Sequence record: NC_061451.1
DNA length: 64,000 nt
Direction: 5' to 3' (one strand)
Part shown: one piece after another, positions 22,664-60,701 of the stretch
Numbering within the stretch: the first letter of the stretch is position 1
Layout of the letters: each line of letters begins with the position of its first letter
The notes under the pieces: model-generated
Told to the model about the DNA's origin: nothing
Seen by the model: only the letters and a program-made list of their open reading frames with translations
Database searches by the model: none
Position numbers and translations under genes: made by a program

Positions 22664-23911
22664 TTATTTACATGCTTTGATTGCATCAGTGATAAGGTAC
22701 TGCATGTTAAGCAGAGTAGGCTTGTTCACAGATTTAGCTCCAGTGAACTTGCCGCCCATCGTCTGAGCGGTGATCTCCCAATCATTGATATCGCCATCAA
22801 AGGCAGAGAACGGAGCCTGAATAGCGACCGTCTTGCACTTGTGATCTTCGATAGTCGCTTCATAGTACCAGTCCGGGCCTTGGCCCATACCATCGGTATG
22901 AACTGCGCGGAACTTGTATTTGCCACCTGTAGCACGCGTCAATTGATCTGCGATTTTGTTGTGTTGCGCCTGCGTGAACTTTTCAAACTTAGCAGGGGTA
23001 ACTTGCGCAAAGGCAATGTCGCCGCCCAATGGCTGGACAGGTGGGAACAGAACATATGGACCCTTCTTAGCTGCACCGCCTTTACCGTCCGTGCTTTGCA
23101 CGCCAGCAACGAATGCAGCGAACGCCTTGTCGAAGTCGTTGAACGTACCCAGCTGCTTAGCTTTGCGATTGTCTGGATGACCGTGAACTACTTCTTCAAT
23201 GTGCTCACCGAACTTCACGCTAGCCACAGTGAATCTACCTTTGCCTATGAGATCCTTATAGGAGAATTTCATGTCAGCGCTTTCACCGAAAATGATAGCA
23301 GTGTTCGGTCCGTCTGGCGACGGTGCATAGAAGTAGAAGGAGTCACTTGAGCCATCATCGGCCATGCCCCCGATAGCGGAGCCAGGAACTTTCTTCAATC
23401 CCGAGAACTTAGCAATACGCTTACCTGACAATACGTCATCGCCATCATCAGGCTCAAACAGAGTTTGGAATTGTTCCATCGTGTGAACGACTACGCCGGA
23501 AGCAGCAGAGCCAGCAGCCTTGCCCGACTTAGCATTAGTAGCAGCTACACCACGCTTGGTCGTAGCAGCAACAGCATTACCCGCAGCAGGTTTGATTTTG
23601 ATCGCACGCAGAGCATTGATGGTAGCCACCAGCGTCTTCGCCTTGTACAAGTTACGCACAGCGGTGACGAGGGTTTTACCAGCAGCTTTCTTGGCGAGGC
23701 TCTGAGTAGCATCTTCGTCTTTCAGCAGCTCAAGCAGCGTAGACAACTTAGACGTGTCTAGCTCTTTGATCTTAACCAGCTCTTCCAGACGTTTGGTAAT
23801 CACAGCAGCGTTCTTACCAAACAGGATAGCGGCGTTAGCCAGCTGCGGCTTAGTCGCAGATTCAGACTTAACCGTCTGCTCTTTATCGAAATTCAATTTA
23901 ATCAGTGACAT
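22664..23911 (-). CDS. Lys/Ala-rich putative internal head protein
   Basis: 415 aa; N-terminus MSLIKLNFD...VKSESA resembles 42356..43477 and 43488..44489. Confidence 0.6.
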   Translation of the reverse strand: MSLIKLNFDKEQTVKSESATKPQLANAAILFGKNAAVITKRLEELVKIKELDTSKLSTLLELLKDEDATQSLAKKAAGKTLVTAVRNLYKAKTLVATINALRAIKIKPAAGNAVAATTKRGVAATNAKSGKAAGSAASGVVVHTMEQFQTLFEPDDGDDVLSGKRIAKFSGLKKVPGSAIGGMADDGSSDSFYFYAPSPDGPNTAIIFGESADMKFSYKDLIGKGRFTVASVKFGEHIEEVVHGHPDNRKAKQLGTFNDFDKAFAAFVAGVQSTDGKGGAAKKGPYVLFPPVQPLGGDIAFAQVTPAKFEKFTQAQHNKIADQLTRATGGKYKFRAVHTDGMGQGPDWYYEATIEDHKCKTVAIQAPFSAFDGDINDWEITAQTMGGKFTGAKSVNKPTLLNMQYLITDAIKACK

Positions 23912-23920
23912 GTTAAGTCC

Positions 23921-24472
23921 TTACTTGCGGTTTTTAGTCCAGTTAGAGTTCTGAGGTTTCTTTTCGCTTTGTGGCGAAGTGTTTTCCTCGTTAATCTCCT
24001 CCTCGTCCTCATCTTCGTCCTCGACGACAGGCTCAGCAGCAGGCGCGGCTTCGATCTTAGTCACTTCGAGAATTTGAGAGGGCAGTGGATTCTGATTTAC
24101 AGATGAAGCGACAGCAGCAGGTTCGCTTACTGTAGGCTCTACAGCAGCAGTCGCACCTACAACATGTTCGTGGACGATCTGCTTAGTCAGCAACGCGCCT
24201 TTCTCAGCGAGAATCTGATCAGCACGTTCTTGGTCCCACTTAACCCACAGGATATCGAGACCCTTGTGTGCGTACATGAAACCCTGAGGCAGCTTACCAC
24301 GGCCGTTGAATGGCAGACCGTTAGAAGGAACGCCAGGCTCGAACTCGTCCATCAGTTCCCACTTGCGCTTAGCCGTGATACACTTCGGCCCCCACACGCC
24401 ATCACATGCACCATCATACAGATCGAGCATGGTCATGATGACTTGGAGCTTCTGATAGAATTTATTCAGCAT
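23921..24472 (-). CDS. Protein with PG_binding_1-like N-terminus and acidic tail
   Basis: KLQ.IM..LDLYDGACDGVWGPKC..A..KW matches the LQ..L...G.Y.G..DG..GP.T..A pattern. Confidence 0.55.
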   Translation of the reverse strand: MLNKFYQKLQVIMTMLDLYDGACDGVWGPKCITAKRKWELMDEFEPGVPSNGLPFNGRGKLPQGFMYAHKGLDILWVKWDQERADQILAEKGALLTKQIVHEHVVGATAAVEPTVSEPAAVASSVNQNPLPSQILEVTKIEAAPAAEPVVEDEDEDEEEINEENTSPQSEKKPQNSNWTKNRK

Positions 24473-24734
24473 CTTTCTTTTTCTCCGGACGAGGGACGTC
24501 TTTGCCGATGATACGTTTGAACAAACGCAGAGCCATAACAGCTTCGGTTTGAGCCATGCGAGATTGCTGCTGGAACTGCATCGGATTTTCTTTCATCCAA
24601 TCAACTACACGCTGCAACTCACGCGCATTAATCAGCTTTTGGGCCAGCTTACCTTGAAGGTACACACGAACACCAGTAGTGGTGATCTTCGCTGCACTGG
24701 TGCTCTCTGCCAAATTGATCACAATCTTAGTCAT
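24462..24734 (-). CDS. Small hypothetical protein with the shared N-terminal signal
   Basis: MTKIVINLAESTSAAK. Confidence 0.7.
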   Translation of the reverse strand: MTKIVINLAESTSAAKITTTGVRVYLQGKLAQKLINARELQRVVDWMKENPMQFQQQSRMAQTEAVMALRLFKRIIGKDVPRPEKKKDAE

Positions 24735-24746
24735 TATCTTTTCCTT

Positions 24747-24770
24747 AAAAGAAAGGGGCCGAAGCCCCTT
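24747..24770 (-). terminator. Intrinsic terminator with UUCG loop
   Basis: AAGGGGC-TTCG-GCCCCTT-TCTTTT. Confidence 0.8.
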
Positions 24771-24773
24771 ATC

Positions 24774-27700
24774 TTACACTGACTTGTCTTTCGACGCAGT
24801 GAGTTTCAGTTTGGTCAATGCAGCCAGACACTGTTTCATGTTCGGGATGCTGTAGCCAGCTTTCTGAATACGGTTGATACGCGCTTTCGCACCAGCAACG
24901 TTCTTCACGAAACTAATCCACATACCAGACGACAGGCTGAACGTACCGAACTTACGAGTGTTCGGGATTTTCGTTCCCACGAAGCGTTTCACTTTCGGGT
25001 TAGTCGCAAGGTCGAACATGATGCGCAGACGATCTTCCATCACCATCGGATATGCTTTGATGTGCTTAACATCTTTCGCAGAGGTATGACGAATCTGGAA
25101 GAACTGTTTCAACTGCGACTGCGCCTTAACAGCCAGCTGGTAGTTGAAGCTCAGCTTAGGCGTAGACTCATCGAAGAAGTCCTGAACGAACTCCAGACGG
25201 CGAGAGGACGGACCGTCAAAGTCCAGCTTCTTAGCCTCGATGAAGTCCAAGAACTTCTCAAAGTCAGAGTAGTACGCGCAGTCGATATACACGTAATCCC
25301 CGAACTCGGTGAACTCGAAGTCCTTGAGCGCTTTCGCATCTGGGTCGGTCGCATCAGCATACAGAGCAACGAAGCCGTTGTACACAGTAGGCGTCAGCTC
25401 CAGAGACATATCGGTACCGTCGTCCAGTGTAACAGCAGTACCACGAACAGCCTTGCGCACTTTGTTGTCCAGCGGAGGAAGTTCAGCAGCCTTACGACGA
25501 CGAACACGGGCAGCTGCCTGCTCTACGCCTTCGTTGATTGGCTTACCTTCTTCTTTGTTCGCTTTACGTTGAGTAACGCGGGCGTTCTTACGCTCTTGAG
25601 CCTCAACTTTCTTCTCGGTTGCTTTCGAGTCGGCAGTTTGAGTCTCATCGGTCACGGTGTCTTCGACTTCAACGCGCTTGGCTTCTGCCTCAACACGCTT
25701 GCGGTCTTTAGCTGTCGCCCACGGCTTACGCACTTCAAAGAAGCGTTTCAGATCAGCAGGGGATACCTTACCAGCGTAATGCACTTTGTTCGCAGGCACA
25801 GTAACGATTTCCTCGCCACCAGCAAGACGAACACGCACGGTACTGATAGGGCTGTCCGCACGCAGCTTACCGTCAGCAGTACGAACCGTAACGCTCACGA
25901 TGATACCGTTACCGAACTCAGTCACAACAGGTGCACGGTTCAGCGCGTCTTTCACGTTCTCGCCACTTGAGAAGTTCTGGTTGCGTGCCCAATCAAGCAG
26001 ACGCTCCAGTCCCCAGTTATGACGGTCTGGGATCTTCTGGTTAGCAACGATAGGTACCTGCTCCATGATACGGAAGTCACGCAGAGCCGGAGTAGCAGGC
26101 AGCGGCTGCATTGCTGCAATCGTTGTCTTACGCATCTCTTGGAACTCTTGCGCTTCAATATCGTTCAGGTCACGCTTGGCCAGGAAGTACGGCTTAAAGT
26201 CTTCCATCGTGTTGTTATCGATCAACAGACTTGCATTCATCTTGATTGGAGCAAGCTGATACTGGTCGAGTTTCTCGTAACGCTGGTTACCTTTCTCGTC
26301 GAAACGAGTTTTCTCCAGCGTCTTCCACATCAGACGTGCAACCTTACCTACTTCAAGAGTCTTGTTCGTCATCACCCAATCGATGAACACGGCTTCGCGT
26401 TTCATATCGCCTGGCTTACCGTTCTCATCAAGCACGGCAGCAGCAACATCAGGACGGAAGATACGCGCAGTAGACTGATCGTATGTACCCGGCGACCACG
26501 GTGTGTCACAGCGAATGATACGACTACCCATCTGCATGTTGTGGCCTTCACTGATTGCCTGTTCGTTAGCAATCAGAATCTGCACACGGTCATCGGTCTT
26601 GAACGCGTCAAGGTTGGCCTCTTTGTTCTGGCCTAACTTACCGACTTCACCGTGATACACAACAGCGACCTTCTTATAGTTCTCAGGCAGAGAGTTATAG
26701 ATTGCGTTTGCAGCACGCGTGTAGCGAGTGAACACAATCAACTTGCCCTGAACCTCTGGTTTCCAGTAGTCCGGGTCTTCCGGAGGTGGAACCATTGAAG
26801 GTGGCAGTGTTTGACGCTGGAACTCTTCGGACTGTTTACGCGCCAGATACTTCTGACCCTGATAGACAGCCATATCAAGTTCACGAGGAGTAACGCCCTG
26901 CGTCCAGTTAAAGATTTGTTGCTCTTTGACCAGCGGGTCACGTTCAGGCTGCACTTCAAAGTGCTTGCGAATACGCTCGATGATGGTCAGGACTTTAGCA
27001 GAGACGAACTTGGTGACGCCCGCGTTTTCAAACGTCAGACGAGCAACGTCATCACCCATCGGGTCGGTCAGCATCATCTCCATGCGCTGGAAGTACATGT
27101 TGAGGTCAGCGTTACCTGCGAGCAATGCGCCCAGGTCATCACCTTCTTCAATATCATCTTCGTCAATGTCGTCAGAGGCAGTAGCTTCTGCACCATCCTC
27201 TTCGTCATCTTCACCAGCAGATGCAGCACGGCGTTTGGCGTTGTTAGCAGCTTCCTGCAACTTCTCCAACACCTGAGCATACATCGCGTTATACACCTCT
27301 TGGTGCAGCGATGAGTTAGGCACAGTCGGGTCATCAATCTCAACCTGAATGAAGGTATCGATTGGGTTCGGCAACATGAACGCCCAGTTCTTACGCTTGA
27401 ACGAGATGAACGCCGTGTGGTTAGACATACGCGAGTGAGCACGACGAATCATTTCAATGTCGTCTTTCGCGCCGTCGTATGCAACGTCGAGAGAGTCACC
27501 GAACATCGCAGGCGTCATCAGTGCAGCCTGACCAACAATGTCACGCACGCGGTCAGTTACCAGAGTACCAGTAGCGATACGCGCATAGCGAACAGATGGT
27601 GCGGTGAATACTGCTTTGGTGTTGAAGTGCACCTGAGAGCCTGACTGGCCTCCAGAGAAGTTCTTAACCTTATGCGACTCATCCAGCATAACGTAGCTGA

Positions 27701-30608
27701 AATTGAAGCGGTTAACGAACTCAACAGCACCACGTACGCGAACACGCACGCCACCAATGTCAACGTTGAACGTACCAGTCTGCAAGAAGCTCAGGCCAAC
27801 GATGAAGAGGGTGTTCTGGGGAGCCTGCTTAATCACGTCGTACATACGGTCTTCACCCCAGGAGTTCACGGTGTCAGACGTAATAGGTACGGCGTTCCAA
27901 CCATCAGCAATCTTGTGCAAGTCATCACACCAGTTCGATACGAGGTTGGTAGGGCAGATGATCAGAGGACGAATGTTCTCTTCACCCAGGTCATTCAGCT
28001 CCTGAATGGTAGCAGCAATATCGGACAGACCAATGATTGTCTTACCACCGCCAGGCGCGATAAAGACTGTAGCGTAACGCGGACGGCGGCGCAGTGTTTT
28101 GTGCGCTTCTACCTGATGTGGTAAGAGTGCAGCACCAGCTTTGAGTCCAGGAATACGAATGTCTTCAATCGTGATACCCTGATCAGGCTTAAGGCGTTCA
28201 ATCTCAGTTTCCGCAGATTCGAAGATCTCCAGAGACTTAGGAATGACCGCGCTGTACATCTTGGAGAACGGCAGAATGATTTGCTGCAAACGTTCTGCGC
28301 CTGGCGCTTCGTCGCTTTCAACCAGAGAGCTAAACAGCTTCTTACGATCAGCATTGCCGATAGCAGCAGCCAGCTCACGATACAGCGCACCACCGAAGTA
28401 GTTGTTCAGTCGCGCCATGTCGCTGATTTTGGCAGTCTGACCCATCACAAAGTAATGCGTGTGATTAGGCAGAGACTCCATAGCACCAGCAATGTCACCG
28501 CTCATCTCAGTAACGGTAGTCGCTACCATGTTCGAGCCGCGCAGGCCAGACGCATCGTTGAGCACGCGTAGCATGATACGCATAGCAATCAGACCAGAAT
28601 CACCCTGAGCCAGAGTAAAGTCATTCTCAATCAGACCCGCGTACAGGTTGTTGTCGAGAGAGCTTTCGGTCAGTGACGCGTTCTCTGCATCCATACCGAT
28701 TGCAGCACGCGCTTGCTTGATCAGCGTAGGCAGATCAGGCACCAGCTTGTGGTTGAATGCGAAAGAATACGCAGCCACAGTCTGTGCGATGATGCTAACA
28801 AGGCCATCAACTTCCGAGTCTTCGGTAGTCGTGAACACGATGGTCTTATCGTTGACGCTATCGATCAGTTTGCCCTTCGCAGCTTCCAGTTTAGCCGCCT
28901 GCAACAGCAGGTCATTAGCAACACGATACGAGGTCATGTTACCGCTAGACTGGTTGCTCATGATGTTGCGGATAACGTTCGACGCTGAGCGGAAGTTAGG
29001 CGTTTCGCCAGGCTCTGCAAAGTCGTAACCAAGCATATCAGCAACGTCTAACGAGTTAGGCGCTTTCATACCGACAGTACGGGTTTCGTTAACCGACAGG
29101 CCACCACCGTTCGAGGTGTTAACCACCAGCGCGAAGTCTGGGTCGACGCCGATACACACGTTGCTGAATCGCGTTAACGATTTGGCTTCCGCCTGCATCG
29201 AGTTATCGAAATCGAGGTTGCCGTTCTGAATAGCGAAGATGTTGGTACGCAGCGTCTGGTGTTCAGTAGACAGCGGTACGCCTTTCGCAAACAGATGTTC
29301 CAGCACGCGGTTCAATTCGGTTTCGTAGTTGCGCACCATCTCAACGTCAATGTCTTCACGGCGCGGCAACACAGACAGCGTACCGTTAGGCATGATGGTC
29401 AGATCGTTCTCATCTGCCACAACATCATGGACAGCGTAGCCGAACTTCTCACGCAGTTGTTTGAGCGCAGGCAGACCAGTAGCAGAGGTAACGTAACGTG
29501 GGATACGCGCAGCACGCGTGATACCAGTACGAGTAGAACCACTGATACGGAAGTAATAGCTCGTCCAGCCCTGGAACCAACGATACAGACACATGGTCTG
29601 AGTGTCAGCACCCTGAGAGATGTACTCAACCATCTCTTTGCTCAGGTTAACAATCAGGCCGCCTTCTGCGCGAATGTCGGTAGCAATTGCTACTTCGTTG
29701 AACTCCAGCGGATAGTCGTGGCTGATCTTCATCGCTTCGAGTTTGCGATCAATCATCTGCTTGCCTGGGATAGAGCGCAGGCCCAGAGTCATGAAGTCGC
29801 CGAGCGCATCAACAACGTCTTTGTCCAGATTACGGAACAGGTTGATATCCAGATTGTGCATCTTCGGGTGAACACCACGAAGCGCCGCGTTGTAGATAGA
29901 CCAGTCTTTGCCGAGAGGGATACGAACAACTTTGGTCTGGAACACGTTGGCGTTGGTACGCGCTTCACCGAAGATATCCTTGTACAGGGTCTTCGCGGCG
30001 TTGATAGCTGCCTGAGCAATATCAGAGCTATACACCTGAATGTTCATCTGCTCAAAGTTAGAGTCGTTATCGACACGAGGACGATCACTACCCTGACTGT
30101 TCGTAACGTTGAAGTTACCCGCACCAGCAGCTGGAGACTGCGGGCATGGCGTGCCTGACATGATAATGTCTTTGCCGCCTGGGTACACGGTACTGTTTTC
30201 GATGATAGCGCCTGAGGTATTACTCAAGTTCTCCGCTAACGCCGTTTTGATTTCACGCGACAGCTTACCGCTGTTCAGCAGCACCTGAATCTTGTTCGTG
30301 GACATGTCCACATATTGCTGCACACGCTTGGTGAACTCTTCTGGCGCTACTTCCAGAATGTCTTCGAACTCAGCACCATTACGGATGATGTAGTTGAGCA
30401 AGTCGAATGCTGCATAGATACGGGCGACAGTTGACGCAGAGAACACGGCCAGTGTTTCATAGTGACGGCGTGCTTTGCCTGTCACGTACATCTTGGACAT
30501 GAGCTGCTCGGAGCCGAACGGTACAGGTTTTACCGCCAGCGCCTGATTAAAGCTATCAGCAATTTGCTGGGTCGCTGTGGCGGAGGTACTGATAATCTGA
30601 TTCATCAT
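24774..30608 (-). CDS. Giant SWI2/SNF2-family ATPase/helicase (1944 aa)
   Basis: LLPHQ, APGGGKT, LIICP.NL..NW, LDESH, ATGT, VFTRY, EGHNMQ, WSPGTYDQSTARIFR; ~820-aa uncharacterised N-terminus. Confidence 0.88.
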   Translation of the reverse strand: MMNQIISTSATATQQIADSFNQALAVKPVPFGSEQLMSKMYVTGKARRHYETLAVFSASTVARIYAAFDLLNYIIRNGAEFEDILEVAPEEFTKRVQQYVDMSTNKIQVLLNSGKLSREIKTALAENLSNTSGAIIENSTVYPGGKDIIMSGTPCPQSPAAGAGNFNVTNSQGSDRPRVDNDSNFEQMNIQVYSSDIAQAAINAAKTLYKDIFGEARTNANVFQTKVVRIPLGKDWSIYNAALRGVHPKMHNLDINLFRNLDKDVVDALGDFMTLGLRSIPGKQMIDRKLEAMKISHDYPLEFNEVAIATDIRAEGGLIVNLSKEMVEYISQGADTQTMCLYRWFQGWTSYYFRISGSTRTGITRAARIPRYVTSATGLPALKQLREKFGYAVHDVVADENDLTIMPNGTLSVLPRREDIDVEMVRNYETELNRVLEHLFAKGVPLSTEHQTLRTNIFAIQNGNLDFDNSMQAEAKSLTRFSNVCIGVDPDFALVVNTSNGGGLSVNETRTVGMKAPNSLDVADMLGYDFAEPGETPNFRSASNVIRNIMSNQSSGNMTSYRVANDLLLQAAKLEAAKGKLIDSVNDKTIVFTTTEDSEVDGLVSIIAQTVAAYSFAFNHKLVPDLPTLIKQARAAIGMDAENASLTESSLDNNLYAGLIENDFTLAQGDSGLIAMRIMLRVLNDASGLRGSNMVATTVTEMSGDIAGAMESLPNHTHYFVMGQTAKISDMARLNNYFGGALYRELAAAIGNADRKKLFSSLVESDEAPGAERLQQIILPFSKMYSAVIPKSLEIFESAETEIERLKPDQGITIEDIRIPGLKAGAALLPHQVEAHKTLRRRPRYATVFIAPGGGKTIIGLSDIAATIQELNDLGEENIRPLIICPTNLVSNWCDDLHKIADGWNAVPITSDTVNSWGEDRMYDVIKQAPQNTLFIVGLSFLQTGTFNVDIGGVRVRVRGAVEFVNRFNFSYVMLDESHKVKNFSGGQSGSQVHFNTKAVFTAPSVRYARIATGTLVTDRVRDIVGQAALMTPAMFGDSLDVAYDGAKDDIEMIRRAHSRMSNHTAFISFKRKNWAFMLPNPIDTFIQVEIDDPTVPNSSLHQEVYNAMYAQVLEKLQEAANNAKRRAASAGEDDEEDGAEATASDDIDEDDIEEGDDLGALLAGNADLNMYFQRMEMMLTDPMGDDVARLTFENAGVTKFVSAKVLTIIERIRKHFEVQPERDPLVKEQQIFNWTQGVTPRELDMAVYQGQKYLARKQSEEFQRQTLPPSMVPPPEDPDYWKPEVQGKLIVFTRYTRAANAIYNSLPENYKKVAVVYHGEVGKLGQNKEANLDAFKTDDRVQILIANEQAISEGHNMQMGSRIIRCDTPWSPGTYDQSTARIFRPDVAAAVLDENGKPGDMKREAVFIDWVMTNKTLEVGKVARLMWKTLEKTRFDEKGNQRYEKLDQYQLAPIKMNASLLIDNNTMEDFKPYFLAKRDLNDIEAQEFQEMRKTTIAAMQPLPATPALRDFRIMEQVPIVANQKIPDRHNWGLERLLDWARNQNFSSGENVKDALNRAPVVTEFGNGIIVSVTVRTADGKLRADSPISTVRVRLAGGEEIVTVPANKVHYAGKVSPADLKRFFEVRKPWATAKDRKRVEAEAKRVEVEDTVTDETQTADSKATEKKVEAQERKNARVTQRKANKEEGKPINEGVEQAAARVRRRKAAELPPLDNKVRKAVRGTAVTLDDGTDMSLELTPTVYNGFVALYADATDPDAKALKDFEFTEFGDYVYIDCAYYSDFEKFLDFIEAKKLDFDGPSSRRLEFVQDFFDESTPKLSFNYQLAVKAQSQLKQFFQIRHTSAKDVKHIKAYPMVMEDRLRIMFDLATNPKVKRFVGTKIPNTRKFGTFSLSSGMWISFVKNVAGAKARINRIQKAGYSIPNMKQCLAALTKLKLTASKDKSV

Positions 30609-35217: not shown

Positions 35218-36292
35218 TTAAATTGCGTAGCTGGTCATTGAACCCACCGGATATAAGCGCTCTCGCCATATTCAAGTGATTCGAAGAAACTGCACGCACA
35301 ACCTTAGCCTGATACTCTGGAACGTTTTGCATGTTCTGAGTCAGGTTGTAGAAATAGCTGCGCACAAAGTTAGTTCGCTCCACATTGCTCGCTTCCATAT
35401 CAGACGTATCTTGCGTCGGAGTAAGAAGCATATACAGGGCAGCAAGCAGTTCAGGAGTCGGGTCAACAATCTGCGATGCGATAGCGGCACTAAGTTTCAT
35501 CATGCCTTTCGCAACGAAGTCCGCGACAGTTTTGTCGATATACTCGGTGCCAGACTTGCCTACGTTCGGAAGGTACAGTTTCGGCAGAATGTACATGCAG
35601 AAGTAAAGAGGGAAGTCTTTACGCATAACGTCCGAGATAAGCATCTCTGAATAGTCTTTCCAGATGTTCACGTTGTAGTGCCATTCATCGTACGGCACAG
35701 TGCGCATCAGGTTAGACACACTCAGGTCGAGCACCTGATTGGCTGTCGTAGCCAAGTCGATGTAGTTTGCAGCAGGCGAAAGGGACGCACTCGAAACCAA
35801 TTGAACGTAGTTACGAGTCACAGCACCAACAGTGTTATAAATAACATTGAGGAACTCAAGTCCGTTGCCGTTAAGCGCGAACAACACAGAGCGAGGTAGA
35901 CCGACAGTCAGGTATTCGTTATTGTCAGCTACACCCCATAAACGCCAATAGCGCCCACGACCAAGCTGCGTCAGAGGTTGAGGCAGCACGCGGTTGGGGC
36001 GCGGCTTGAGGCAAAACGTGAAGCAGATACCGCTGTCAATCATGATCACTGAATCATCGGGACGATTCGAGTAACCCATCGACATTTGATTGTCGGTACT
36101 GAATACGTTAACCAGAGTGAAGTTCAGAGCTTTGGTGAAAGGCATCTGAGCTTCAATTATCTGGGAGATGACTTGGCGCAAGATAGTGTCAAGCACATAA
36201 GGAGAAGCACTTCGCATTTGTTGCGGTCGATACTGACCACCGAAAGTGCTTTCCTTGAATGTGCGATCTACCTTGTAGTGGGTCATTGCCAT
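35186..36292 (-). CDS. Hypothetical (probable structural) protein
   Basis: 368 aa in a co-directional late block. Confidence 0.7.
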   Translation of the reverse strand: MAMTHYKVDRTFKESTFGGQYRPQQMRSASPYVLDTILRQVISQIIEAQMPFTKALNFTLVNVFSTDNQMSMGYSNRPDDSVIMIDSGICFTFCLKPRPNRVLPQPLTQLGRGRYWRLWGVADNNEYLTVGLPRSVLFALNGNGLEFLNVIYNTVGAVTRNYVQLVSSASLSPAANYIDLATTANQVLDLSVSNLMRTVPYDEWHYNVNIWKDYSEMLISDVMRKDFPLYFCMYILPKLYLPNVGKSGTEYIDKTVADFVAKGMMKLSAAIASQIVDPTPELLAALYMLLTPTQDTSDMEASNVERTNFVRSYFYNLTQNMQNVPEYQAKVVRAVSSNHLNMARALISGGFNDQLRNLIEYLGLTKAG

Positions 36293-37581
36293 TACTTGAC
36301 CGACTGTTTAAGCAGACGCTTCTGTTGAGGACTCAGACCCATAACGTCGGAGATTTGATCAATCTTCGCCAGAGTCAGAACGCCTTTAGCAGTACCGCTA
36401 GAACCAGTCAGGCTGATCTTAACGAACTCACGTCCTTCACGACCTGTGACCAGCTGGTGGATAAGAGTGTTCTTACCGCTACGGCCTGCACGCAATGCGC
36501 TGCTTGCCATGCCCAGAATCTCGGTAACAGCTTCGCGCTTCTCAGAAGGAGACAGGCCAGGAACGAGACGCACATAAAGGCTGTCGTTCTGCACACGCAC
36601 GGAGTCGAAGATTTCTTTGTTACGACCACGAACGGTATGCTGGCGTTGACCCAACTGAGTCATGTTACGCAGGTCATCAGTCGAACGATTGATAGGCTTA
36701 CGTTCGCTGTAGTTCAGGAATCCATCCAGAGCCATCAGCTGGTTGATAGCACGCTTCATTTCAGGAGCGGTTTCAATCAGACGGCCAAGTGGGAACGAGT
36801 TAGGAACTTTCTCATCCACCAGCGAGGTGATGTAGTTTTCACTCAGACCAGTAGCCACTGCAATCTTGGTAGAGACTACGATAGCATAGGTCGGATAGTG
36901 CAGGCCGTCAGAGTTCACGAAGTTATCGATGAACACATAGGTCTGGAAGATGATTGGGTCAGTACCCTGCGCGATGAAAGTACGTGTACGAATCTTAGAG
37001 TAATCTTCTTTACTCAGAATCTTCGACAGGTAGTTAGCGATGGTAGCAGCCAACTTGGTGTGTTCTTTCGGTGCGCCGTTCTTAACGTCAATGCTCATCA
37101 AACGCACCAGCTGGGTCTGCTGGTCTTTGGCCTGATTGATAACACTAAGCAGTGACTTGGAAGCGCCTGTCTGATCTTTGAAGGCACTGAACGTTTTGCT
37201 ATTCAGAATCTGATAAGCAACGGACAACTCGCCGATAGCCTGAGACAACTGACTGACCTGAGCGTTATATTTAGCTTTGTTCTGGACGTCAGAAATATCA
37301 ATCTTCGACAAGTCGATCACTTGGTTCAGATCGATTGACTTGGCCTGTTTACCTTTGATTGAGCCTTCCAGATCAGAAAGTTCAATCGCTTTAGGGCTGG
37401 CGCTAACAGACAGCAGCTTCTTAGGAATGGTTACAGAAGTAGCAAGAGAGATAACGTTTTCAAGTACCTTCTTGAACTCTTTAGCAGTACGTGCATTACG
37501 CAACGCCACCATGTTCCCAGAGCCGTAATCAACGGATGCGCTGATGCTGCTAACTTCATTGTTTTTGGCAGTCTTAGCCAT
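36292..37581 (-). CDS. Putative virion/head protein
   Basis: Likely start ATG 37581 (GAGGA RBS); SSISA and LSVSA motifs near the N-terminus; GCTAATTT upstream at 37620-37627. Confidence 0.6.
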   Translation of the reverse strand: MAKTAKNNEVSSISASVDYGSGNMVALRNARTAKEFKKVLENVISLATSVTIPKKLLSVSASPKAIELSDLEGSIKGKQAKSIDLNQVIDLSKIDISDVQNKAKYNAQVSQLSQAIGELSVAYQILNSKTFSAFKDQTGASKSLLSVINQAKDQQTQLVRLMSIDVKNGAPKEHTKLAATIANYLSKILSKEDYSKIRTRTFIAQGTDPIIFQTYVFIDNFVNSDGLHYPTYAIVVSTKIAVATGLSENYITSLVDEKVPNSFPLGRLIETAPEMKRAINQLMALDGFLNYSERKPINRSTDDLRNMTQLGQRQHTVRGRNKEIFDSVRVQNDSLYVRLVPGLSPSEKREAVTEILGMASSALRAGRSGKNTLIHQLVTGREGREFVKISLTGSSGTAKGVLTLAKIDQISDVMGLSPQQKRLLKQSVK

Positions 37582-37753: not shown

Positions 37754-38419
37754 TTAAACAGTTACTTTACCTTTTGCTTTAGTCTTGGCAGCTTTCTTAG
37801 CGCCAGTCTTCTGAGCAGCGGTACCTTTGTGGTGAACAGCTTTAGCAGTAGTCTGCTTGCCACCTTTCAGACGCGGTAACGGCTTAAGGGTAGGCTTCTT
37901 CAGGGTAACTGCCTTCGGCGCCACTTTCGGAGTCACGATCTTACCGGCCTTGATGGTCGGCTTGTTCGCTTTACGCGCGGCCAGACGAGCTTTCTGTTTC
38001 GCGATCAGGTTGCTGTAACCAGCTTTCTGTTTCGCGGCCAGGTTGCTACGTGCAACTTTCTGACGGGCCAGCAGCAGTTTACGCACACGGCTCTGAGAAG
38101 CTTGGGTAGCTTTCAGACCTTTGGCGTATTTAGCCTGGCGCTCTTTCAGACGCTGCTCAATGCTTTTGCCTTTGGCGCGAGCTTTGGTTTTACGCAGGTG
38201 GGTAGCACGTTCACCGTCGAACTTTTTCTCAGCAGCGGTTTTCTTCGCAGCAGGCTTTTTAGCCGCAGCTTTTTTCGCTGTTGGAGTTTTGGTGCCAGCA
38301 GTTTTAGGCTTACGTGCAGTGGTTTTCTTCGCAGCAGGTTTTTTAGCAGCGGTTTTCTTGGCTTTAGATCCACCTTTAACCGGGTCGGTAGGTGAAGTCA
38401 GTTTGCGTTTTACGGCCAT
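37754..38419 (-). CDS. Histone H1-like Lys/Ala-rich DNA-binding protein
   Basis: KKTAAKKPAAKK repeats; extremely basic; monocistronic between ACTAATTT (38486-38493) and a terminator. Confidence 0.75.
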   Translation of the reverse strand: MAVKRKLTSPTDPVKGGSKAKKTAAKKPAAKKTTARKPKTAGTKTPTAKKAAAKKPAAKKTAAEKKFDGERATHLRKTKARAKGKSIEQRLKERQAKYAKGLKATQASQSRVRKLLLARQKVARSNLAAKQKAGYSNLIAKQKARLAARKANKPTIKAGKIVTPKVAPKAVTLKKPTLKPLPRLKGGKQTTAKAVHHKGTAAQKTGAKKAAKTKAKGKVTV

Positions 38420-42355: not shown

Positions 42356-43477
42356 TTAATGCCAAGAATTTTGAGCAGCCATGCGGTCTACTTTCTTAAA
42401 CTTCTGCAATTTCTTGATCGATGTTTCAAGAGCTTTGCGGGCGCTTGCGTAAGGTGCACCTGGATTAGAGCCACCGCCATTGCCACCGAAGTTAGCATAA
42501 CTATTCCATTTGCCTGTCTTACTATCCTTGCTCATACGGTAGCTTGCTGTGCCGAGTTTGTACTCAATGCTGTTCGCTTTAACCACGAACTTACCTTTCG
42601 ACACGCCACCTTTCTCGATCAAGTTCTTAACGATGTTCTTGACTTCTTTCGAAGCTGGCCAGTGGTCATGAGCTTGGATAGTTACCTTGGTACCCGGTAC
42701 TTTCTTAGTGCTATAACTGTCGAGAACAGTTTTACCAAGCATTGGCTTATCTTTAGACGGATCGCCAGCCATTGCGTCATCTAAAGAACTGGCTTTGGGC
42801 TTACCCAGAAGTTTTTCTGCACGATCAGCTTTGATTGCACGTTTCTTCTCTGGTGAATAAGCACCGCCGCCTACAAGATCTTTACGCTTCTTAGTAGAGG
42901 CTTTCGCAACAGGAGCTTTCTTCGCTGCTTTGGTCACAGTCTTACTACCCAGCGCATCGAACTTAGCAGAAGCCAGGAACTTAGGCTTGAACTGACCGCG
43001 CTTGCCAGTAACGCCGAACTCGTTCAGCTTGGCAGTACGCAATGCAGCTAATACCTTAGGAGCTTTTTCAGTAATGCCCTGAAGAGAAGTTGAGGTCAGT
43101 CCCATCTTCAAGCCAGACAGTCCGTGCTTACGCGCATAAGACGCAGACTCTTTCAGATGCAGCTTGGCTTCTTTGAGTGCGGCGCTGCCTTTAGCTTTAT
43201 AGTCAGCAGCTTTGGCAGAAGCGCGAGATTTTGCATCACCGGTCAGCGTTTTGACTTTAGCGCGGGCCTTGCTCCACGCATCGATGTTACGCGCAGCACT
43301 AACGCCAGCAGTCTTAGCTTTCTTCAAATGACCGAGGATGGTCGTCAGTTCTGCTTTCTTCTCTGAGTTAATAACCAGAGTAGCAACGCCATTCACCTTA
43401 GCGATTTTGTAGCTAGGCTTTTTAGCAGCAGACTCAGACACAACGTGATCTGCAAGATTGATTTTAATGAGTGACAT
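42356..43477 (-). CDS. Lys/Ala-rich putative internal head protein
   Basis: MSLIKINLADHVVSESAAKK; N-terminal domain paralogous to 43488..44489. Confidence 0.65.
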   Translation of the reverse strand: MSLIKINLADHVVSESAAKKPSYKIAKVNGVATLVINSEKKAELTTILGHLKKAKTAGVSAARNIDAWSKARAKVKTLTGDAKSRASAKAADYKAKGSAALKEAKLHLKESASYARKHGLSGLKMGLTSTSLQGITEKAPKVLAALRTAKLNEFGVTGKRGQFKPKFLASAKFDALGSKTVTKAAKKAPVAKASTKKRKDLVGGGAYSPEKKRAIKADRAEKLLGKPKASSLDDAMAGDPSKDKPMLGKTVLDSYSTKKVPGTKVTIQAHDHWPASKEVKNIVKNLIEKGGVSKGKFVVKANSIEYKLGTASYRMSKDSKTGKWNSYANFGGNGGGSNPGAPYASARKALETSIKKLQKFKKVDRMAAQNSWH

Positions 43478-43487: not shown

Positions 43488-44489
43488 TTATGCGTTGTAT
43501 TGAGTCAATGGCCGTGGCTTACGCTTCGGCAAACGTTTTGTTTTTATACCAGCAGCTTTATCTGAGGCGCGTTTATCTTCGCGTGCAGAGATGCCAACTG
43601 TTTGTGACAGGTAGCTGGTCAATGAAGCCTTAGACAAGGTTTCTTTGCGCTTGCCTGAGTCAACAACATATGAATTGCCCGAAGCGTGCGTGATCTTGAG
43701 CTTGAGCTTACCATTATCATAATGGATGTTGCCGTCAGCATCACCGTACAGTTTGGCAGACGCAGCTTTTTCCTGATACTTCTCCAGCTTGTCGATAATG
43801 CTACGCAGAGCGCTACTGCTTTTGTAGATATTGTTCAGATGCTTCTTACCTTCGTCCACTTTAGGCGCGGCAGCTTTCTTCGTCACAGGCTTTGTAACTA
43901 AACGCTTGGTAGTTTTCACAGCAGGTGCTTTACCCGAAGCTGCGATCTTCTCACCAATCTTATCGAACTTATCACCAGTAGCATATCGAGGCTTCAAAGG
44001 TACTGTGCGATGTGCACCGTCTTTTGCACGGAAACTATCAGGCTTCGCTTTACTGATCTTGCCTAACGTATAGGTCGGGTCAGTTTGTGTGATATACGAC
44101 GCTTTGATGGACAGGTCGAGCGCACTCAAGCCAGCTTTCTTCAAAAGATCAGCAGCAGCTTTAGCAAGTGCTTTGGCTTCTGTTACACCGTGCTTGATAG
44201 CTGCTTTGTTATCACTAATCTTTTCACGAATAGGCGCTTTCTTTGCAGGGGTCTGAGCCTGACTTAGCTTGAGTTTCAATTTCTCAGTAGCAACACCAAG
44301 CTTTGCCGCAGACACACCGAGAGTTTTGGCCTTCTTGAGATTAGCAACGGCCTTCGTAACAGCGGACTTGTGTTTGCTGTCAATTACGAGGGCCTGTGCA
44401 CCGCCGATAGGAACGAGATGATAAGCTGGCTTGGCTTTGGCCGATTCAGATACTGCAAACTCCGCCAAATTGATTTTGATAAGTGACAT
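43488..44489 (-). CDS. Lys/Ala-rich putative internal head protein
   Basis: MSLIKINLAEFAVSESAKAK; shares KP.Y...LVI.S..K...LKKAK..GVSAA with its neighbour. Confidence 0.65.
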   Translation of the reverse strand: MSLIKINLAEFAVSESAKAKPAYHLVPIGGAQALVIDSKHKSAVTKAVANLKKAKTLGVSAAKLGVATEKLKLKLSQAQTPAKKAPIREKISDNKAAIKHGVTEAKALAKAAADLLKKAGLSALDLSIKASYITQTDPTYTLGKISKAKPDSFRAKDGAHRTVPLKPRYATGDKFDKIGEKIAASGKAPAVKTTKRLVTKPVTKKAAAPKVDEGKKHLNNIYKSSSALRSIIDKLEKYQEKAASAKLYGDADGNIHYDNGKLKLKITHASGNSYVVDSGKRKETLSKASLTSYLSQTVGISAREDKRASDKAAGIKTKRLPKRKPRPLTQYNA

Positions 44490-44498: not shown

Positions 44499-45095
44499 TT
44501 AGACTCTGCCGGTCATAGTAAATTCTTTGCCCGCAGAGTAATCTCCTAAGGCCGCATAAAGAGAATCACGCAACATCTTCTGAATGATATCCGAGTTATA
44601 CGCGGACGCGTCGCGGAAAGCGACTTCAACAGTTTCAGTGCGTGGGTTGATTACAGCATAACGTAGAGGAGCAATCTCCTGAGCGTCACACCACAGATCG
44701 ACAACGTGCTGTAGTCCAGGCGTCATCTGAATTTTGAAATCAGACAGCAGGAACACAGCACTTTGAATTGGCGGCGGAGCAGACTGAGAGACAACAGCAT
44801 TGTCTCCAAGTTTCTCCATAGCCATAGACGCATTGTACACTGAGGAGAATTTCGTTTTCAGTGCAGAGGTCTGTACTACCTTATAGCTATTCGATGAAAT
44901 GCCCTGACGGCGCAGCTTGGCGATACGCACAACGTAATCACCAGAATCGTCTGAGGCAAATGCAACGTAAGCGTAGCTCACGAAGCCAGGCTCCTCACTA
45001 AGCAGCTTGTGGTCGAGGGCACGAACACCCAAGACAGCACTAAGTGCCTGTAGGCCCATCTGAACTTCGCGGGACAGAGACACGTACATTTCCAT
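44499..45095 (-). CDS. Hypothetical protein with the shared N-terminal signal
   Basis: Likely start MEMYVSLSR at 45095; the longer track ORF overlaps the lysin. Confidence 0.6.
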   Translation of the reverse strand: MEMYVSLSREVQMGLQALSAVLGVRALDHKLLSEEPGFVSYAYVAFASDDSGDYVVRIAKLRRQGISSNSYKVVQTSALKTKFSSVYNASMAMEKLGDNAVVSQSAPPPIQSAVFLLSDFKIQMTPGLQHVVDLWCDAQEIAPLRYAVINPRTETVEVAFRDASAYNSDIIQKMLRDSLYAALGDYSAGKEFTMTGRV

Positions 45096-49924: not shown

Positions 49925-50371
49925 TTAATATCTACGAGGCTTCTTAGGCTTCTTGATCGTAGACTTAGGACGCTTGATAGCCCGCAGTGCTTTGCGTGCT
50001 TCCACAATTTGTTTGGCTACAGTGGAACGACGAGCTTTGACCTGGTCTGTATCTTGGTCAGTGCCTTTCAGCTTATCGAGTCTGTTCCATTCTTGCACCA
50101 GACGATCAACAACACCAGCACGACCTACGCGTTGCTGGTTGATGCGCACAATGTCCTGATGAGTCTTCACGGAGTTTTGTGCGTCTTTCTGTTTAGCACG
50201 CGCAGATGCAACGTGGTCAGAGTTACCCTCAGCAGACTTCTCGTTAAGCTGCTTACGTCTAAGTGCCAGACGGCGTTGCGCTTGCTTGAGTTCGTCTTTG
50301 GAGTTCTCCAGTTGCGTCTGCATGTCTTCAAGAGGACTTGAGCGTGCGCTCAGACTAACGAGAAGTTCCAT
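49925..50371 (-). CDS. Basic coiled-coil protein with the shared N-terminal signal
   Basis: Start MELLVSLSAR at 50371 with GAGGA RBS. Confidence 0.7.
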   Translation of the reverse strand: MELLVSLSARSSPLEDMQTQLENSKDELKQAQRRLALRRKQLNEKSAEGNSDHVASARAKQKDAQNSVKTHQDIVRINQQRVGRAGVVDRLVQEWNRLDKLKGTDQDTDQVKARRSTVAKQIVEARKALRAIKRPKSTIKKPKKPRRY

Positions 50372-50378: not shown

Positions 50379-50930
50379 TCACACAGGCTGTATGGTAATG
50401 ATCTGGACGCCTTGTTCATTACGCGACTTGAGAATGCGGAAGCGGAAGTCTATTGGATAAATCCATTCGAGTTCATCCATAAGACCATCAAGAATCATCT
50501 CACGTTCTTCTTCGTCACCACCGAATTCTTTATCAAGATCAGCAGCCATGATAAGATTGTACGTGCGTTGCCAATAGTTGAAGGCTTTGTTCTTTGGCCC
50601 AGGAAGAATCTCCAGCATCGTATCTGTCTTGCCTGCCTTTGCAAAACCTTTAGCAGTAGCGAAGTCTTGACTGAACGACAGGTACTTGTTGATCATCACG
50701 AAAGGATTCTTAGCCTGCTTAAACAGAGCCATGAGTTCTTTTTCGTACAGACCACGATACAGAGGCATCTCAGGACGTTCGGGATATTTAGCGATCAGAT
50801 CATCAAGCGCAGGGCTGGAGCGATTAGCGTCAATCACATGCCCTTTATCGTGGAGCATCGTCCACATAATGTCTTGCTGTCTGTCTGTGTAGGCAGGTAT
50901 CTTAGCACTGAGGCTAACCATAAGTTCCAT
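50379..50930 (-). CDS. R-S-E clade ADP-ribosyltransferase (Alt/ModA/Vip2-like catalytic domain)
   Basis: PLYRGL (Arg), YLSFS (S-x-S), DELEWIYP (E-x-E), C-terminal F.I....I.I strands; N-terminus MELMVSLSA. Confidence 0.78.
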   Translation of the reverse strand: MELMVSLSAKIPAYTDRQQDIMWTMLHDKGHVIDANRSSPALDDLIAKYPERPEMPLYRGLYEKELMALFKQAKNPFVMINKYLSFSQDFATAKGFAKAGKTDTMLEILPGPKNKAFNYWQRTYNLIMAADLDKEFGGDEEEREMILDGLMDELEWIYPIDFRFRILKSRNEQGVQIITIQPV

Positions 50931-51058: not shown

Positions 51059-51595
51059 TCAGACGGTACCTAATACTTCAAGCACATCTTCGTCGTCCAC
51101 ACTTGCAGACCACGAACGCATAACAGAAGCATTGCCTCGATTGCCTGTCAGCATTGATTTAACTGCTGGTGTGGCTTCGATTTCGGCATAGTGTTCCAAG
51201 AGAGCTTTGTCATCTTTGAACCACATAATGGAGTTACCATCCTTAGGGACGATCAAGAATTGGGTAGGCTTCTGGGTGACGTTTAACGTCAGGTAGTAAT
51301 CACCAGCACCTTTAGGAGTCAGCATCGGCATTGGCTTCATCGCATACATGAAGTCCTTAGCGTGCATGAGTTTCTGATCGCCGAGCAACCAGATTGCGCC
51401 TTCTTCGCCTTGACGCACAGCAGACAAATCGCCTTTACGTGTTGCAATCGTTCCGAATACATCTTTATCGAAACGTGACAGACCGAAGATCAGCGAGGCG
51501 AGACGCTTCAGGTCCGGGGTCGTGCATGGACTGTTGATCACAGCCATACCCTCAGACCCAAGTGTGAATTTAGAGAGTGAAATAAAGAGTTCCAT
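51059..51595 (-). CDS. Hypothetical protein with the shared N-terminal signal
   Basis: MELFISLSK at 51595 (alternative start 51607); ACTAATTT at 51630-51637. Confidence 0.7.
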   Translation of the reverse strand: MELFISLSKFTLGSEGMAVINSPCTTPDLKRLASLIFGLSRFDKDVFGTIATRKGDLSAVRQGEEGAIWLLGDQKLMHAKDFMYAMKPMPMLTPKGAGDYYLTLNVTQKPTQFLIVPKDGNSIMWFKDDKALLEHYAEIEATPAVKSMLTGNRGNASVMRSWSASVDDEDVLEVLGTV

Positions 51596-53340: not shown

Positions 53341-53419
53341 AACATCTCCTGAATATTAAACCTCAACGTTCTTGAATTATGTTTACAGATTGCTTCGGTC
53401 CGTCCTTGCGATTTAAAGT

Positions 53420-53785: not shown

Positions 53786-53825
53786 TTGGGAAAATTAGTG
53801 ACATTCCCTTTTATTCAGAAAATTC

Positions 53826-59699: not shown

Positions 59700-60041
59700 C
59701 TTGGAACCTCAAAAAGCTCGTTCTCTTGGCTGATCTTTACAGAATCCTGCTTGTTCTACGTCAGAGACTCAAATTCTATCAGATAGTTGATTAGGTTAGG
59801 TAGATTAGGTATGGCATAGCATCTTATGCAGCATGAGCGCACTATATTCACACGGAATACAGCCTTCTCTCCCGAATCCCTAGCGCCTAGACGCATATCC
59901 CTCACCCATAGACATACCGTAGGGGTCGAAAACGCGAAAACCGCTTTAGCATGGTTATTTGGTGCCAATTCAGCGGAATTGATTTCTAAGCGCACTTTGA
60001 GACTATTCTTATTGCCGTAGGTCGATTCTGTAGGAAAGTGG

Positions 60042-60701
60042 TTATTTTTTGCGCGAAATTTGCTGATTCAGTTTTTTGCCGATCTGCGTCAAAACGCGCT
60101 CAACGGTCTCTCCGTCACGCTCACCGATAGCCATAGCGAGCCTTTCGCCCTGTTCACGCGATAGCTCAGGCATAATCAGCTTGAGCATCTTTGATCGCGC
60201 CTTTGCAGACTTTGATTTGCCTTTTGACAGCGATTGCGTTTCCATTTCGGCAGCAACACGGCTCATTGTGCGCTGCACGCGACGATCTGCGAATATATCA
60301 CCGAAGATATTGCCAAACAGGTCTTGGAACGAGCGTCCGCCACCAAATATCTCGTCCTTAGTGAAGCGCACTTCCTTTCCTAGCGCATTACGCTTAACGC
60401 TGTGCGTGCTTTCCACTTCGTTTTGGACGCGTGCACCTTCGATGAAGTTCTCATCAGGCCGTGATTTCTTACCTTCAGCACCGGGCTTAGTGACGCCGTT
60501 ACGCAGCTCAGCACGCCCCTCAACAGCCGCATCAGGGTCAAACATGTCATCAGTGTTGACGCTCTGATTAGGGTCAAAGGGAATCTTGTCTGTCAGCTTG
60601 TTTTCATCTGGCCACGAACGAGGGATATCCGACGCAGGTTGAGGGCTATTCGTCATATCACCGTTCTTCTCGCTGTTCAGACTCACATAAATCTTGGTCA
60701 T
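60042..60701 (-). CDS. Putative virion protein with the shared N-terminal signal
   Basis: MTKIYVSLNSE; AGGAG RBS. Confidence 0.65.
   Translation of the reverse strand: MTKIYVSLNSEKNGDMTNSPQPASDIPRSWPDENKLTDKIPFDPNQSVNTDDMFDPDAAVEGRAELRNGVTKPGAEGKKSRPDENFIEGARVQNEVESTHSVKRNALGKEVRFTKDEIFGGGRSFQDLFGNIFGDIFADRRVQRTMSRVAAEMETQSLSKGKSKSAKARSKMLKLIMPELSREQGERLAMAIGERDGETVERVLTQIGKKLNQQISRKK

Follow-up and report, generated by a model that had tools for sequence, protein, structure and literature searches.

A short N-terminal S-x-S-A tag on otherwise unrelated proteins of Erwinia phage pEa_SNUABM_7, a candidate address for packaging into the prohead

Introduction

In phage T4, the internal protein IPIII needs no more than its first 10 residues to be loaded, and the gp21 protease has the ADP-ribosyltransferase Alt among its substrates (PMC9026906; PMC3012670). 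Here we describe a terminal peptide tag that recalls this capsid targeting sequence, seen in a 64-kb stretch of DNA (the window), which is identical to positions 124001-188000 of NC_061451.1, the genome of Erwinia phage pEa_SNUABM_7 (pEa7). The core of the tag is phi-phi-phi-S-x-S-[A/K], where phi is a hydrophobic residue and x is the middle residue of S-x-S; S-x-S is invariant and x is free. With moderate confidence, we read the tag from sequence comparisons as a putative terminal propeptide, a mark for entry into the prohead that gp151, a gp21-like head maturation protease, would recognise.

The T4 sequence, carried by IPI-III and Alt and processed by gp21, is the closest described counterpart. 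Like the T4 peptide of about 10 residues, the pEa7 tag is short, N-terminal and found on diverse proteins, including an ADP-ribosyltransferase. The loci that carry it are hyperplastic between relatives, a protease of predicted gp21 fold is encoded, and capsid and core proteins carry the same motif as the cargo. Unlike in T4, where the protease cuts after Glu, the pEa7 core has no conserved Glu. The pEa7 tag can also be as short as 6 residues (M-phi-phi-S-x-S), and a second, longer class occurs at a C-terminus as well. The candidate cargo also differs in including a 220-kDa helicase, a DNA ligase and a nudix hydrolase. By analogy, the principle would be that of the T4 capsid targeting sequence, and the motif is what appears to differ.

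The phages phiKZ, 201phi2-1 and SPN3US (proteases gp175 and gp245) are likewise jumbo phages with many internal or ejected head proteins. Their cleavage motif is repeated in propeptides and in the protease, Val is preferred just upstream, and the flanking residues are small, as in pEa7. Their motifs end in Glu (AXE in SPN3US), and most of their propeptides are 111-254 residues long and belong to paralog families, unlike the pEa7 tags of 6-19 residues on unrelated bodies. pEa7 itself is not phiKZ-like: it has a sigma factor and T4-like replication genes, and no virion RNA polymerase genes were seen in its annotation.

At their maturation and release sites, herpesvirus assemblins cleave the Ala-Ser bond, and a hydrophobic residue stands a few positions ahead of it. 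Assemblin belongs to the gp21 fold superfamily, and its sites, with small residues, an upstream hydrophobic and a free middle position, may be compared with phi-S-x-S↓A (the arrow marks a cut); the order of Ala and Ser is reversed, and the likeness is a lead. Encapsulin cargo peptides, the C-terminus of the P22 scaffold and the C-terminal tail of the HK97 protease are short terminal peptides that dock cargo inside an HK97-fold shell. By analogy, the N-terminal peptides of the SLIKINLA kind in pEa7, together with the C-terminal SLIRLRLD of its protein gp146, would fit such a shell-docking use. Encapsulin peptides are not removed, unlike the proposed pEa7 tag.

pEa_SNUABM_7/14 is a Snuvirus jumbo phage of 265,635 bp whose host is E. 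amylovora. The minus strand carries nearly all genes of the window. Since the claim under study concerns a signal common to many proteins, the rest of NC_061451.1 was added to the window, and its 278 likely genes form the set for the proteome-wide statistics. The comparison phages were Y3 (Sasquatchvirus), JA11 (Salmondvirus) and the relative PaBG. Positions below are those of the window unless an accession is given.

The tag exceeds chance and is read as a peptide

The N-terminal tag occurs in the pEa7 proteome far beyond chance. The original prediction quoted eleven N-termini with a shared signal; all eleven are encoded at the proposed minus-strand starts, and ten of these are RefSeq gene starts of NC_061451.1. 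In an unbiased scan of all 3- and 4-residue patterns, which compared the first 25 residues with the rest of each protein, VSL ranks first (p 2.7e-7); VSLS (13.6-fold), S.SA (3.9-fold, p 1.4e-5) and SESA (14.5-fold) are also in the top eight, and SLSA is in the top ten. Ten of 278 proteins have [VI]SL starting at residue 5 or 6, with 0.38 expected (p 1e-11). The strict pattern ^M.{0,4}[VILFMY][VIL]S.S matches 10 of 278 N-termini, with 0.53 expected (p 2.5e-10); in shuffled N-termini, the number of matches averages 0.8 and peaks at 5.

A profile of 46 tags defines the core. Positions P-3 to P-1 are hydrophobic in 30-36 of the 46 and S-x-S is invariant; x is L in 20, E in 11, T in 6, I in 5, V in 3 and M in 1, and the +1 residue is A in 30 and K in 9. 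The tag does not have the features of a Sec/Tat or lipoprotein signal, in which a positively charged n-region precedes a hydrophobic core of at least 10 residues and a small-x-small site: the hydrophobic run of the tag is 3 residues, the tag is over by residue 8-9, and residue 2 is often Glu. Only the small-x-small rule of such signals is matched.

The similarity of gene starts could also arise without any peptide function, from a nucleotide-level signal (translation initiation, a promoter or a recombination cassette) or from the descent of duplicated 5' ends. The tagged genes do have a similar ribosome-binding site, TAAGGA(A/C), and several tagged proteins are paralogs. However, Ser is encoded by five different codons at each of tag positions 6 and 8, with AGY and TCN codons at both, and at the hydrophobic positions neither the codon nor the residue is fixed. 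Because both Ser positions use five codons from both families, selection acts on the peptide and not on the DNA; judged by this codon usage, the tag is maintained by selection at the amino-acid level. Moreover, S-x-S is invariant in orthologs down to 39% identity, the motif is found internally (capsid linker, gp146) and at a C-terminus, and the bodies behind it are diverse, as described below. An origin at the nucleotide level is disfavoured, and we give it hardly any credence.

Tag formats and tagged proteins

The tag comes in two formats, which the consensus first proposed had merged into one; its S-x-S-A element holds, with a middle residue that varies among orthologs. In the short format (class B), the sequence is M-x-phi-phi-phi-S-x-S-[A/K...]; its commonest form is precisely M-x-phi-phi-phi-S-x-S-A, at the very start of the protein. 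In the long format (class A), M-[ST]-L-I-K-[IL]-N-[LF] is followed 4-8 residues later by [VK]-S-E-S-A. The tagged genes of the window, and the untagged gp192, are as follows; RCTAATTT is a promoter-like element treated in the last section, and pI is the isoelectric point.

22664..23911, minus strand: gp180, 415 residues, basic; class A tag MSLIKLNFDKEQTVKSESA at 23855-23911; body a paralog of gp254 (outside the window)
24462..24734, minus strand: gp182, 90 residues, pI 10.2; tag MTKIVINLAESTSA encoded at 24693-24734; terminator-like hairpin 24770-24753 just upstream
24774..30608, minus strand: gp183, giant SNF2 helicase, 1944 residues; minimal tag MMNQIISTSA at 30579-30608; Pfam SNF2 and Helicase_C
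36292..37581, minus strand: gp191, 429 residues, pI 9.7; EVSSISAS at residues 10-16 and a second copy, LLSVSAS, at residue 56; RCTAATTT at 37620-37627 upstream
37754..38419, minus strand: gp192, untagged, pI 11.8, Ala/Lys-rich; RCTAATTT at 38486-38493 upstream
42356..43477, minus strand: gp198, 373 residues, pI 10.3, Lys/Ala-rich; class A tag MSLIKINLADHVVSESA at 43427-43477
43488..44489, minus strand: gp199, 333 residues, pI 10.2, paralog of gp198; class A tag MSLIKINLAEFAVSESA at 44439-44489
44499..45095, minus strand: gp200 from the ATG at 45095, 198 residues; class B tag MEMYVSLSR at 45069-45095; second motif AVVSQSA at residue 101
49925..50371, minus strand: gp208, 148 residues, pI 10.7, coiled-coil-like; class B tag MELLVSLSA at 50345-50371
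50379..50930, minus strand: gp209, 183 residues, small ADP-ribosyltransferase-like; class B tag MELMVSLSA at 50904-50930; hairpin 50971-50948 just upstream
51059..51595, minus strand: gp210, 178 residues; class B tag MELFISLSK at 51569-51595
60042..60701, minus strand: gp221, 219 residues; variant tag MTKIYVSLNSE at 60669-60701, in which S-L-N replaces S-x-S

Class B in the window thus comprises gp200, gp208, gp209 and gp210, with gp221 as a variant and gp183 as the minimal form. Outside the window, it includes the nudix hydrolase gp127 (MMLNVSLSAK), gp141 (MLIFLSESAS), the NAD-dependent DNA ligase gp156 (MKVRLSISAS) and gp157 (MVLSESAS), and further gp233, gp243 and gp253. Class A is found on gp180, gp182, gp198 and gp199 in the window and on gp254 outside it. 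Three plus-strand genes outside the window belong to the tagged set. The figure of about 10 tagged proteins given at the outset was an undercount, since the genome-wide set is about 20. Our census table holds 21 proteins, 19 of them tagged and the other two being gp192 and gp146; pI exceeds 9 in 13 of the 21, against a proteome median of 6.4. The gp209 protein matches phrog_832, 'RNA polymerase ADP-ribosylase' (expectation value, E, 2.6e-13). That these proteins are effectors was assumed in the prediction; a DNA ligase, a nudix hydrolase and a 220-kDa SNF2 helicase are among them.

As in T4, a short N-terminal peptide is common to otherwise unrelated proteins of one phage. After removal of the first 20 residues of each tagged protein, BLASTP related only gp180 to gp254, gp198 to gp199 and gp141 to gp157. 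In this last pair, the tag is followed by a common KMPT-N domain. The long-tag proteins are mostly in paralog pairs (gp180/gp254 and gp198/gp199), whose similarity extends far beyond the tag. The expectation of unrelated bodies apart from gp198 and gp199 mostly holds, with three related pairs in place of one. Because only these three pairs remain related once trimmed, at least 14 unrelated bodies carry the tag by this sequence measure.

One N-terminus is internal to an annotated gene. The ATG of MEMYVSLSR (45095) lies within gp200 as annotated in RefSeq, with a start at 45155 (MVGLLALS...). The RefSeq start is probably wrong and 45095 the true start, since the Y3 and JA11 orthologs start there, with MKIFVSLAA and MEILVSISA, respectively.

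Conservation in related phages

Alignment of the relatives indicates that the tag is conserved in three genera, Snuvirus, Sasquatchvirus and Salmondvirus. It is kept on orthologs in Y3, whose capsid protein is 88% identical to that of pEa7, and in JA11 (71%), and it is also found on non-orthologous proteins of both phages. Tagged genes that are absent from pEa7 encode MQIFVSLSS (171 residues) in Y3, and MEIEVSLSA (595 residues) and MKTVVSISA (654 residues) in JA11. All 24 of the 24 gp183 orthologs, at 39-100% identity, start with (M)(0-5 residues)-phi-phi-S-x-S-[AK], where x is T, V, M, A or E.

The two Ser residues are kept while the residue between them changes. The gp180 family has KSESA in pEa7 and DSVSA in JA11, whose ortholog reads MTTISLNVDSVSATK with V in place of E at the middle position. 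The gp141 family has FLSESA in pEa7 and Y3 and FVSVSA in JA11. Since x switches between Glu and other residues among orthologs, it is the S-x-S-A consensus, and not Glu, that is conserved. The original prediction of a Ser-based rather than Glu-based motif stands as far as the motif goes, with both Ser invariant and x being T, V, M, A, E, L, I, Q or H in orthologs; that the Ser residues form a cut site is plausible from the alignments. A conserved Glu of the kind that precedes the cut in T4 (L/I-x-E), phiKZ (S/A/G-x-E) or SPN3US (A-x-E) was absent from the 46 tags and their orthologs.

The other families behave similarly. The gp198 and gp199 orthologs of Y3 begin with MKIKLNVAETLASESA and MSLIRLKLDGSNIVSESA, and gp208 orthologs begin with MKILISLSA in Y3 and MQVLISLSK in JA11. 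Representatives of the gp210 family begin with MEIFVSLSK, MQIVFSLSK and MKVVLSVSA, the last at 29% identity, and one member has no tag. In gp191 orthologs, the motif is EVSSISTA in Y3 and AQLSASV in JA11. The gp221 ortholog of Y3 begins with MRVMISLNSE, and that of JA11 begins differently, with MQTEIIFGSAD.

The region bounded by the DUF2778 and endolysin genes is hyperplastic (window 41944-45672, Y3 18480-22132, JA11 21705-28448). It holds three tagged genes in pEa7, four in Y3 (two of them extra and small) and five in JA11, and it recalls the variable internal-protein loci of T-even phages. The two large tagged proteins of JA11 (595 and 654 residues) sit beyond its DUF2778 gene. Tag swapping was considered for JA11 gp180 (MKVILSLSA, 330 residues), as an ortholog of a class A body with a class B tag, and was dropped at BLASTP E values of 0.17-0.22.

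The motif in the head module

The genome-wide motif scan proposed with the original prediction found the motif in the capsid protein linker, at the portal N-terminus, in the acidic core-like protein gp146 and at the N-terminus of the prohead protease family. Several independent, indirect lines partly support a tie between the tag and head morphogenesis.

In the capsid protein gp147, the HK97 model begins at residue 78, and an exposed, disordered linker of variable length separates it from a conserved N-terminal domain. The linker contains S-x-S in 21 of 21 aligned sequences that are at least 55% identical to the protein of the window phage, including P0001, a 97%-identical stand-in for that protein. 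Here S-x-S directly follows a conserved G-x-phi-phi, and x is Q, H, E, T, V, N or L. The AlphaFold model of gp147 has a mean predicted local distance difference test (pLDDT) of 77.8, and its pLDDT falls below 50 in a single internal segment, residues 67-72. The motif occupies residues 66-68, so that this segment starts within it, after a short strand at 63-66. A hypothetical cut at the motif would remove about 68 residues, or about 19% of the protein. The capsid protein of PaBG was reported to lose about 20% on maturation (PMC7412058).

The protease gp151 is encoded outside the window and matches the PHROG 'head maturation protease' (E 1e-125). Most of 30 homologs, at identities down to about 40%, conserve phi-x-S-x-S-F close to a disordered N-terminus; the motif is absent from the most distant ones (28-37% identity). 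Sequence searches of gp151 against Pfam, NCBIfam and PDB gave no match, and gp21 emerged only by fold search: with a model of the family (pLDDT 84.7), the top three Foldseek matches in PDB were all T4 gp21 (5JBL), the one meaningful match. The scores are weak but specific (probability 0.77-0.89, E 0.03-0.08 with a best value of 0.028, template modelling score 0.48). A prohead protease of the gp21 (assemblin-like) fold, as found in T4-type systems, is thus predicted by the model, with weak support.

The gene of gp146, an acidic protein of 134 residues, adjoins the capsid gene. It contains LVNSVSSA, VVSLNTSE and VVDSESS, and its C-terminus, SLIRLRLD, is the class A N-terminal peptide. Across the proteome, the pattern [ST][LVIK][IV][KRV][LIV].[LFV] has six matches, namely four class A N-termini, the gp146 C-terminus and one other N-terminus. 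Y3 (TLIRIRLD) and JA11 (GLRLRIK) retain the C-terminal peptide, where it comes right after S-E-S or S-S-S. The portal N-terminus carries the motif as IRSESS and LSQSA, and the small protein gp005 carries it as well.

The head module encodes further proteins at NC_061451.1 108885-112100, outside the window. There, gp150 is a second peptidase with a KMPT-N domain and an HExxH metallopeptidase motif, and gp149 is a protein of 690 residues with many phi-x-S-x-S sites, whose Y3 ortholog has five D[IV][DE]SES[GS] repeats spaced along an acidic stretch. A role of gp149 as a loading translocase stays speculation, since its PHROGs label 'ATPase' has no Pfam or PDB support. In pEa7 (gp154, NC_061451.1 114092-115324), Y3, JA11 and PaBG alike, at most a few genes separate a glycosyltransferase gene from that of the head maturation protease.

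This glycosyltransferase, together with two invariant Ser residues around a free middle position, would suit a sequon for covalent modification (O-glycosylation or phosphorylation) in place of a cut site. A strict need for three preceding hydrophobic residues and for a terminal position is atypical of a sequon, however, and the capsid site is exactly at the propeptide boundary. We regard a modification site as very improbable.

Virion proteins of PaBG

PaBG is the only relative with virion data. Its virion band 1 (221,162 Da, "gp202") corresponds to a helicase of 1969 residues with a calculated mass of 221,159 Da. This helicase has the N-terminus MGSLFTLNSLSA, ending in NSLSA, and is 28.6% identical to gp183 over 1991 residues. 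Virion band 9 is gp83, whose N-terminus, MLIKINLLEA, is a class A-type tag. These two tag-bearing PaBG proteins, the helicase ortholog and gp83, are published virion components, in data that do not distinguish head from tail. Band 8 is PaBG_00191, a basic protein seen in several gel bands. Its gene takes the position of gp192, adjoins an SbcD-like gene and has the same upstream element; BLASTP did not link the gp192 and PaBG_00191 proteins. In pEa7, gp192 is likely a co-packaged neighbour of the tagged proteins, and it is possibly a DNA-condensing internal head protein.

The presence of tagged proteins in a virion also bears on whether the tag may be a degron or a chaperone signal that an AAA+ machine, or the metallopeptidase of the head module, would read to set the lifetime or activation of phage proteins. 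Short, hydrophobic and terminal, the tag is N-terminal and, as the class A peptide, C-terminal, as degrons are. It sits on enzymes with no obvious structural role, such as the nudix hydrolase, the ligase and the products of plus-strand genes among replication genes, and the head module does encode the HExxH metallopeptidase gp150 and the PHROGs-labelled ATPase gp149. This ATPase label, however, has neither Pfam nor PDB backing; PaBG virions contain tag-bearing proteins as stable components, the capsid linker, the prohead protease and the core-like gp146 carry the motif, and some tagged genes have a promoter-like element in common with structural genes. A degron or chaperone tag seems to us improbable.

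Cleavage or docking

In the model that we favour, the tagged proteins would be made late in infection, along with the structural proteins, and the hydrophobic strand of the tag would dock them to the assembling core or shell. Class A would add an amphipathic strand, SLIK[IL]N[LF], ahead of S-E-S-A. Once the shell is complete, the protease would cut at or beside S-x-S. Cutting at this motif would also shorten the capsid protein by about 68 residues and would take place in gp146, at the portal N-terminus and in the protease itself. The matured cargo, including the SNF2 helicase, the ADP-ribosyltransferase, the nudix hydrolase, the DNA ligase and the Lys/Ala-rich basic and the acidic proteins, would be retained inside with the DNA. 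We infer the docking, the cut, its exact bond and injection. The motif for cleavage or recognition probably differs from the T4 type, to judge from the conserved positions.

The main rival reading holds that the tag is a docking or incorporation signal only, and that the protease cuts after Glu (S-E↓S in class A; L-S-E↓A at capsid residue 76) or leaves most cargo uncut. Such a protease would be in keeping with the gp21 fold, whose known relatives are all Glu-specific. The class A tags of pEa7 and Y3 are all S-E-S, and about 80% of SPN3US head proteins are uncleaved. The fixed distance from Met to S-x-S would also fit recognition of a free N-terminus rather than a cut site. Against this, Glu is not conserved at the motif: JA11 has SVSA in the gp180 ortholog and FVSVSA in the gp141 ortholog, and helicase orthologs have T, V, M, A or E at x. 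Directly ahead of its HK97 domain, the capsid protein reads GLSE↓AEK, but GLSE is lost even in Y3 (GLT-NEEK), while S-x-S is in all close homologs. A Glu-based site, S-E↓S in class A or L-S-E↓A in the capsid protein, was rejected because Glu is not conserved among orthologs. On balance, docking alone is in our view unlikely.

Several observations weigh against a propeptide cut at S-x-S. Cleavage after Glu is the rule for every characterised gp21-type protease (T4, phiKZ, 201phi2-1 and SPN3US); a Ser/Ala site would have no precedent in the gp21 fold among phages, and gp151 matches that fold weakly (E 0.028). For docking, 6-8 residues make a very short propeptide. In 25 of the 46 tags, the distance from Met to S-x-S is exactly 5 residues, for which a cleavage site alone gives no explanation, and neither this fixed distance nor the C-terminal class A peptide is explained by the propeptide model. 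Tagged gp233, gp243 and the nudix hydrolase gp127 are encoded among replication or early-looking genes, with no promoter-like element. A scan of N-termini across the PaBG genome showed no S-x-S enrichment (4 against 1.9 expected, with rough start calls in a GC-richer genome), and the linker of the PaBG capsid protein has no S-x-S. Virion proteomics was sought for Y3, AD1, fHe-Yen9-02 and the SNUABM phages; none was found, and the GenBank notes were empty. The PaBG result would fit a clade-specific system, on a single comparison.

A wider form of the propeptide model, which we put forward as tentative, is a clade-wide packaging system of Erwinia, Dickeya and Yersinia jumbo phages. In it, a gp21-fold protease would have switched from Glu to Ser/Ala, as in herpesvirus assemblins, and a terminal peptide of 6-8 residues (N-terminal, or C-terminal in the long form) would suffice to load about 20 diverse enzymes, with a 220-kDa helicase like a chromatin remodeller among them, for delivery with the DNA.

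If the propeptide model is correct, a sequence rule would allow the packaged, and possibly injected, proteome of a widespread jumbo-phage lineage to be read from the genome alone. Several phages of this lineage are under development against fire blight and soft rot. The model would add a non-Glu specificity in phages to the gp21/assemblin protease superfamily, and it would offer a very short tag for placing reporter proteins inside large capsids. It would also raise the question of why a DNA ligase, a nudix hydrolase and a giant SNF2 helicase should enter the cell with the phage DNA.

Upstream elements, hairpins and gaps

The element RCTAATTT is found 30-75 nucleotides upstream of 12 genes and occurs 21 times in the genome. 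The genes that it precedes include the tail sheath, PAAR and baseplate genes, as well as the tagged gp157, gp191, gp210 and gp253, and it is kept before the sheath, endolysin, gp192-like and gp210-like genes in Y3, JA11 and PaBG. No sigma-70-like promoters were found at RCTAATTT sites. RCTAATTT is a candidate late promoter element. Since some tagged genes have it in common with structural genes, its distribution suggests that these tagged genes are co-expressed with structural genes. The copies of the window and the strong terminator-like hairpins are as follows.

34003-34010, minus strand: RCTAATTT, 30-75 nucleotides upstream of gp188
37620-37627, minus strand: RCTAATTT, 30-75 nucleotides upstream of gp191
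38486-38493, minus strand: RCTAATTT, 30-75 nucleotides upstream of gp192
51630-51637, minus strand: RCTAATTT, 30-75 nucleotides upstream of gp210
2884-2891 and 53792-53799: further copies of RCTAATTT
51690-51663, 50971-50948, 49917-49893 and 24770-24753, minus strand: strong terminator-like hairpins that bracket gp210, gp209-gp208 and gp182

The gp210 gene forms a separate unit, in which hairpin 51690-51663 and RCTAATTT at 51630-51637 are followed by the gene and by hairpin 50971-50948. In the hairpins that precede gp209 and gp182, the loop is GCTTCGG; TTAAGGAA and the start codon come directly after the hairpin, and a promoter would have no space before either gene. The ribosome-binding site TAAGGA(A/C) is alike among the tagged genes. 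Scans of the window for tRNA genes and Rfam families were both empty. Two non-coding gaps, of about 340 nucleotides at 59700-60041 and about 485 nucleotides at 53341-53825, contain no tRNA, Rfam family or annotated gene, and the larger one includes the RCTAATTT copy at 53792-53799.

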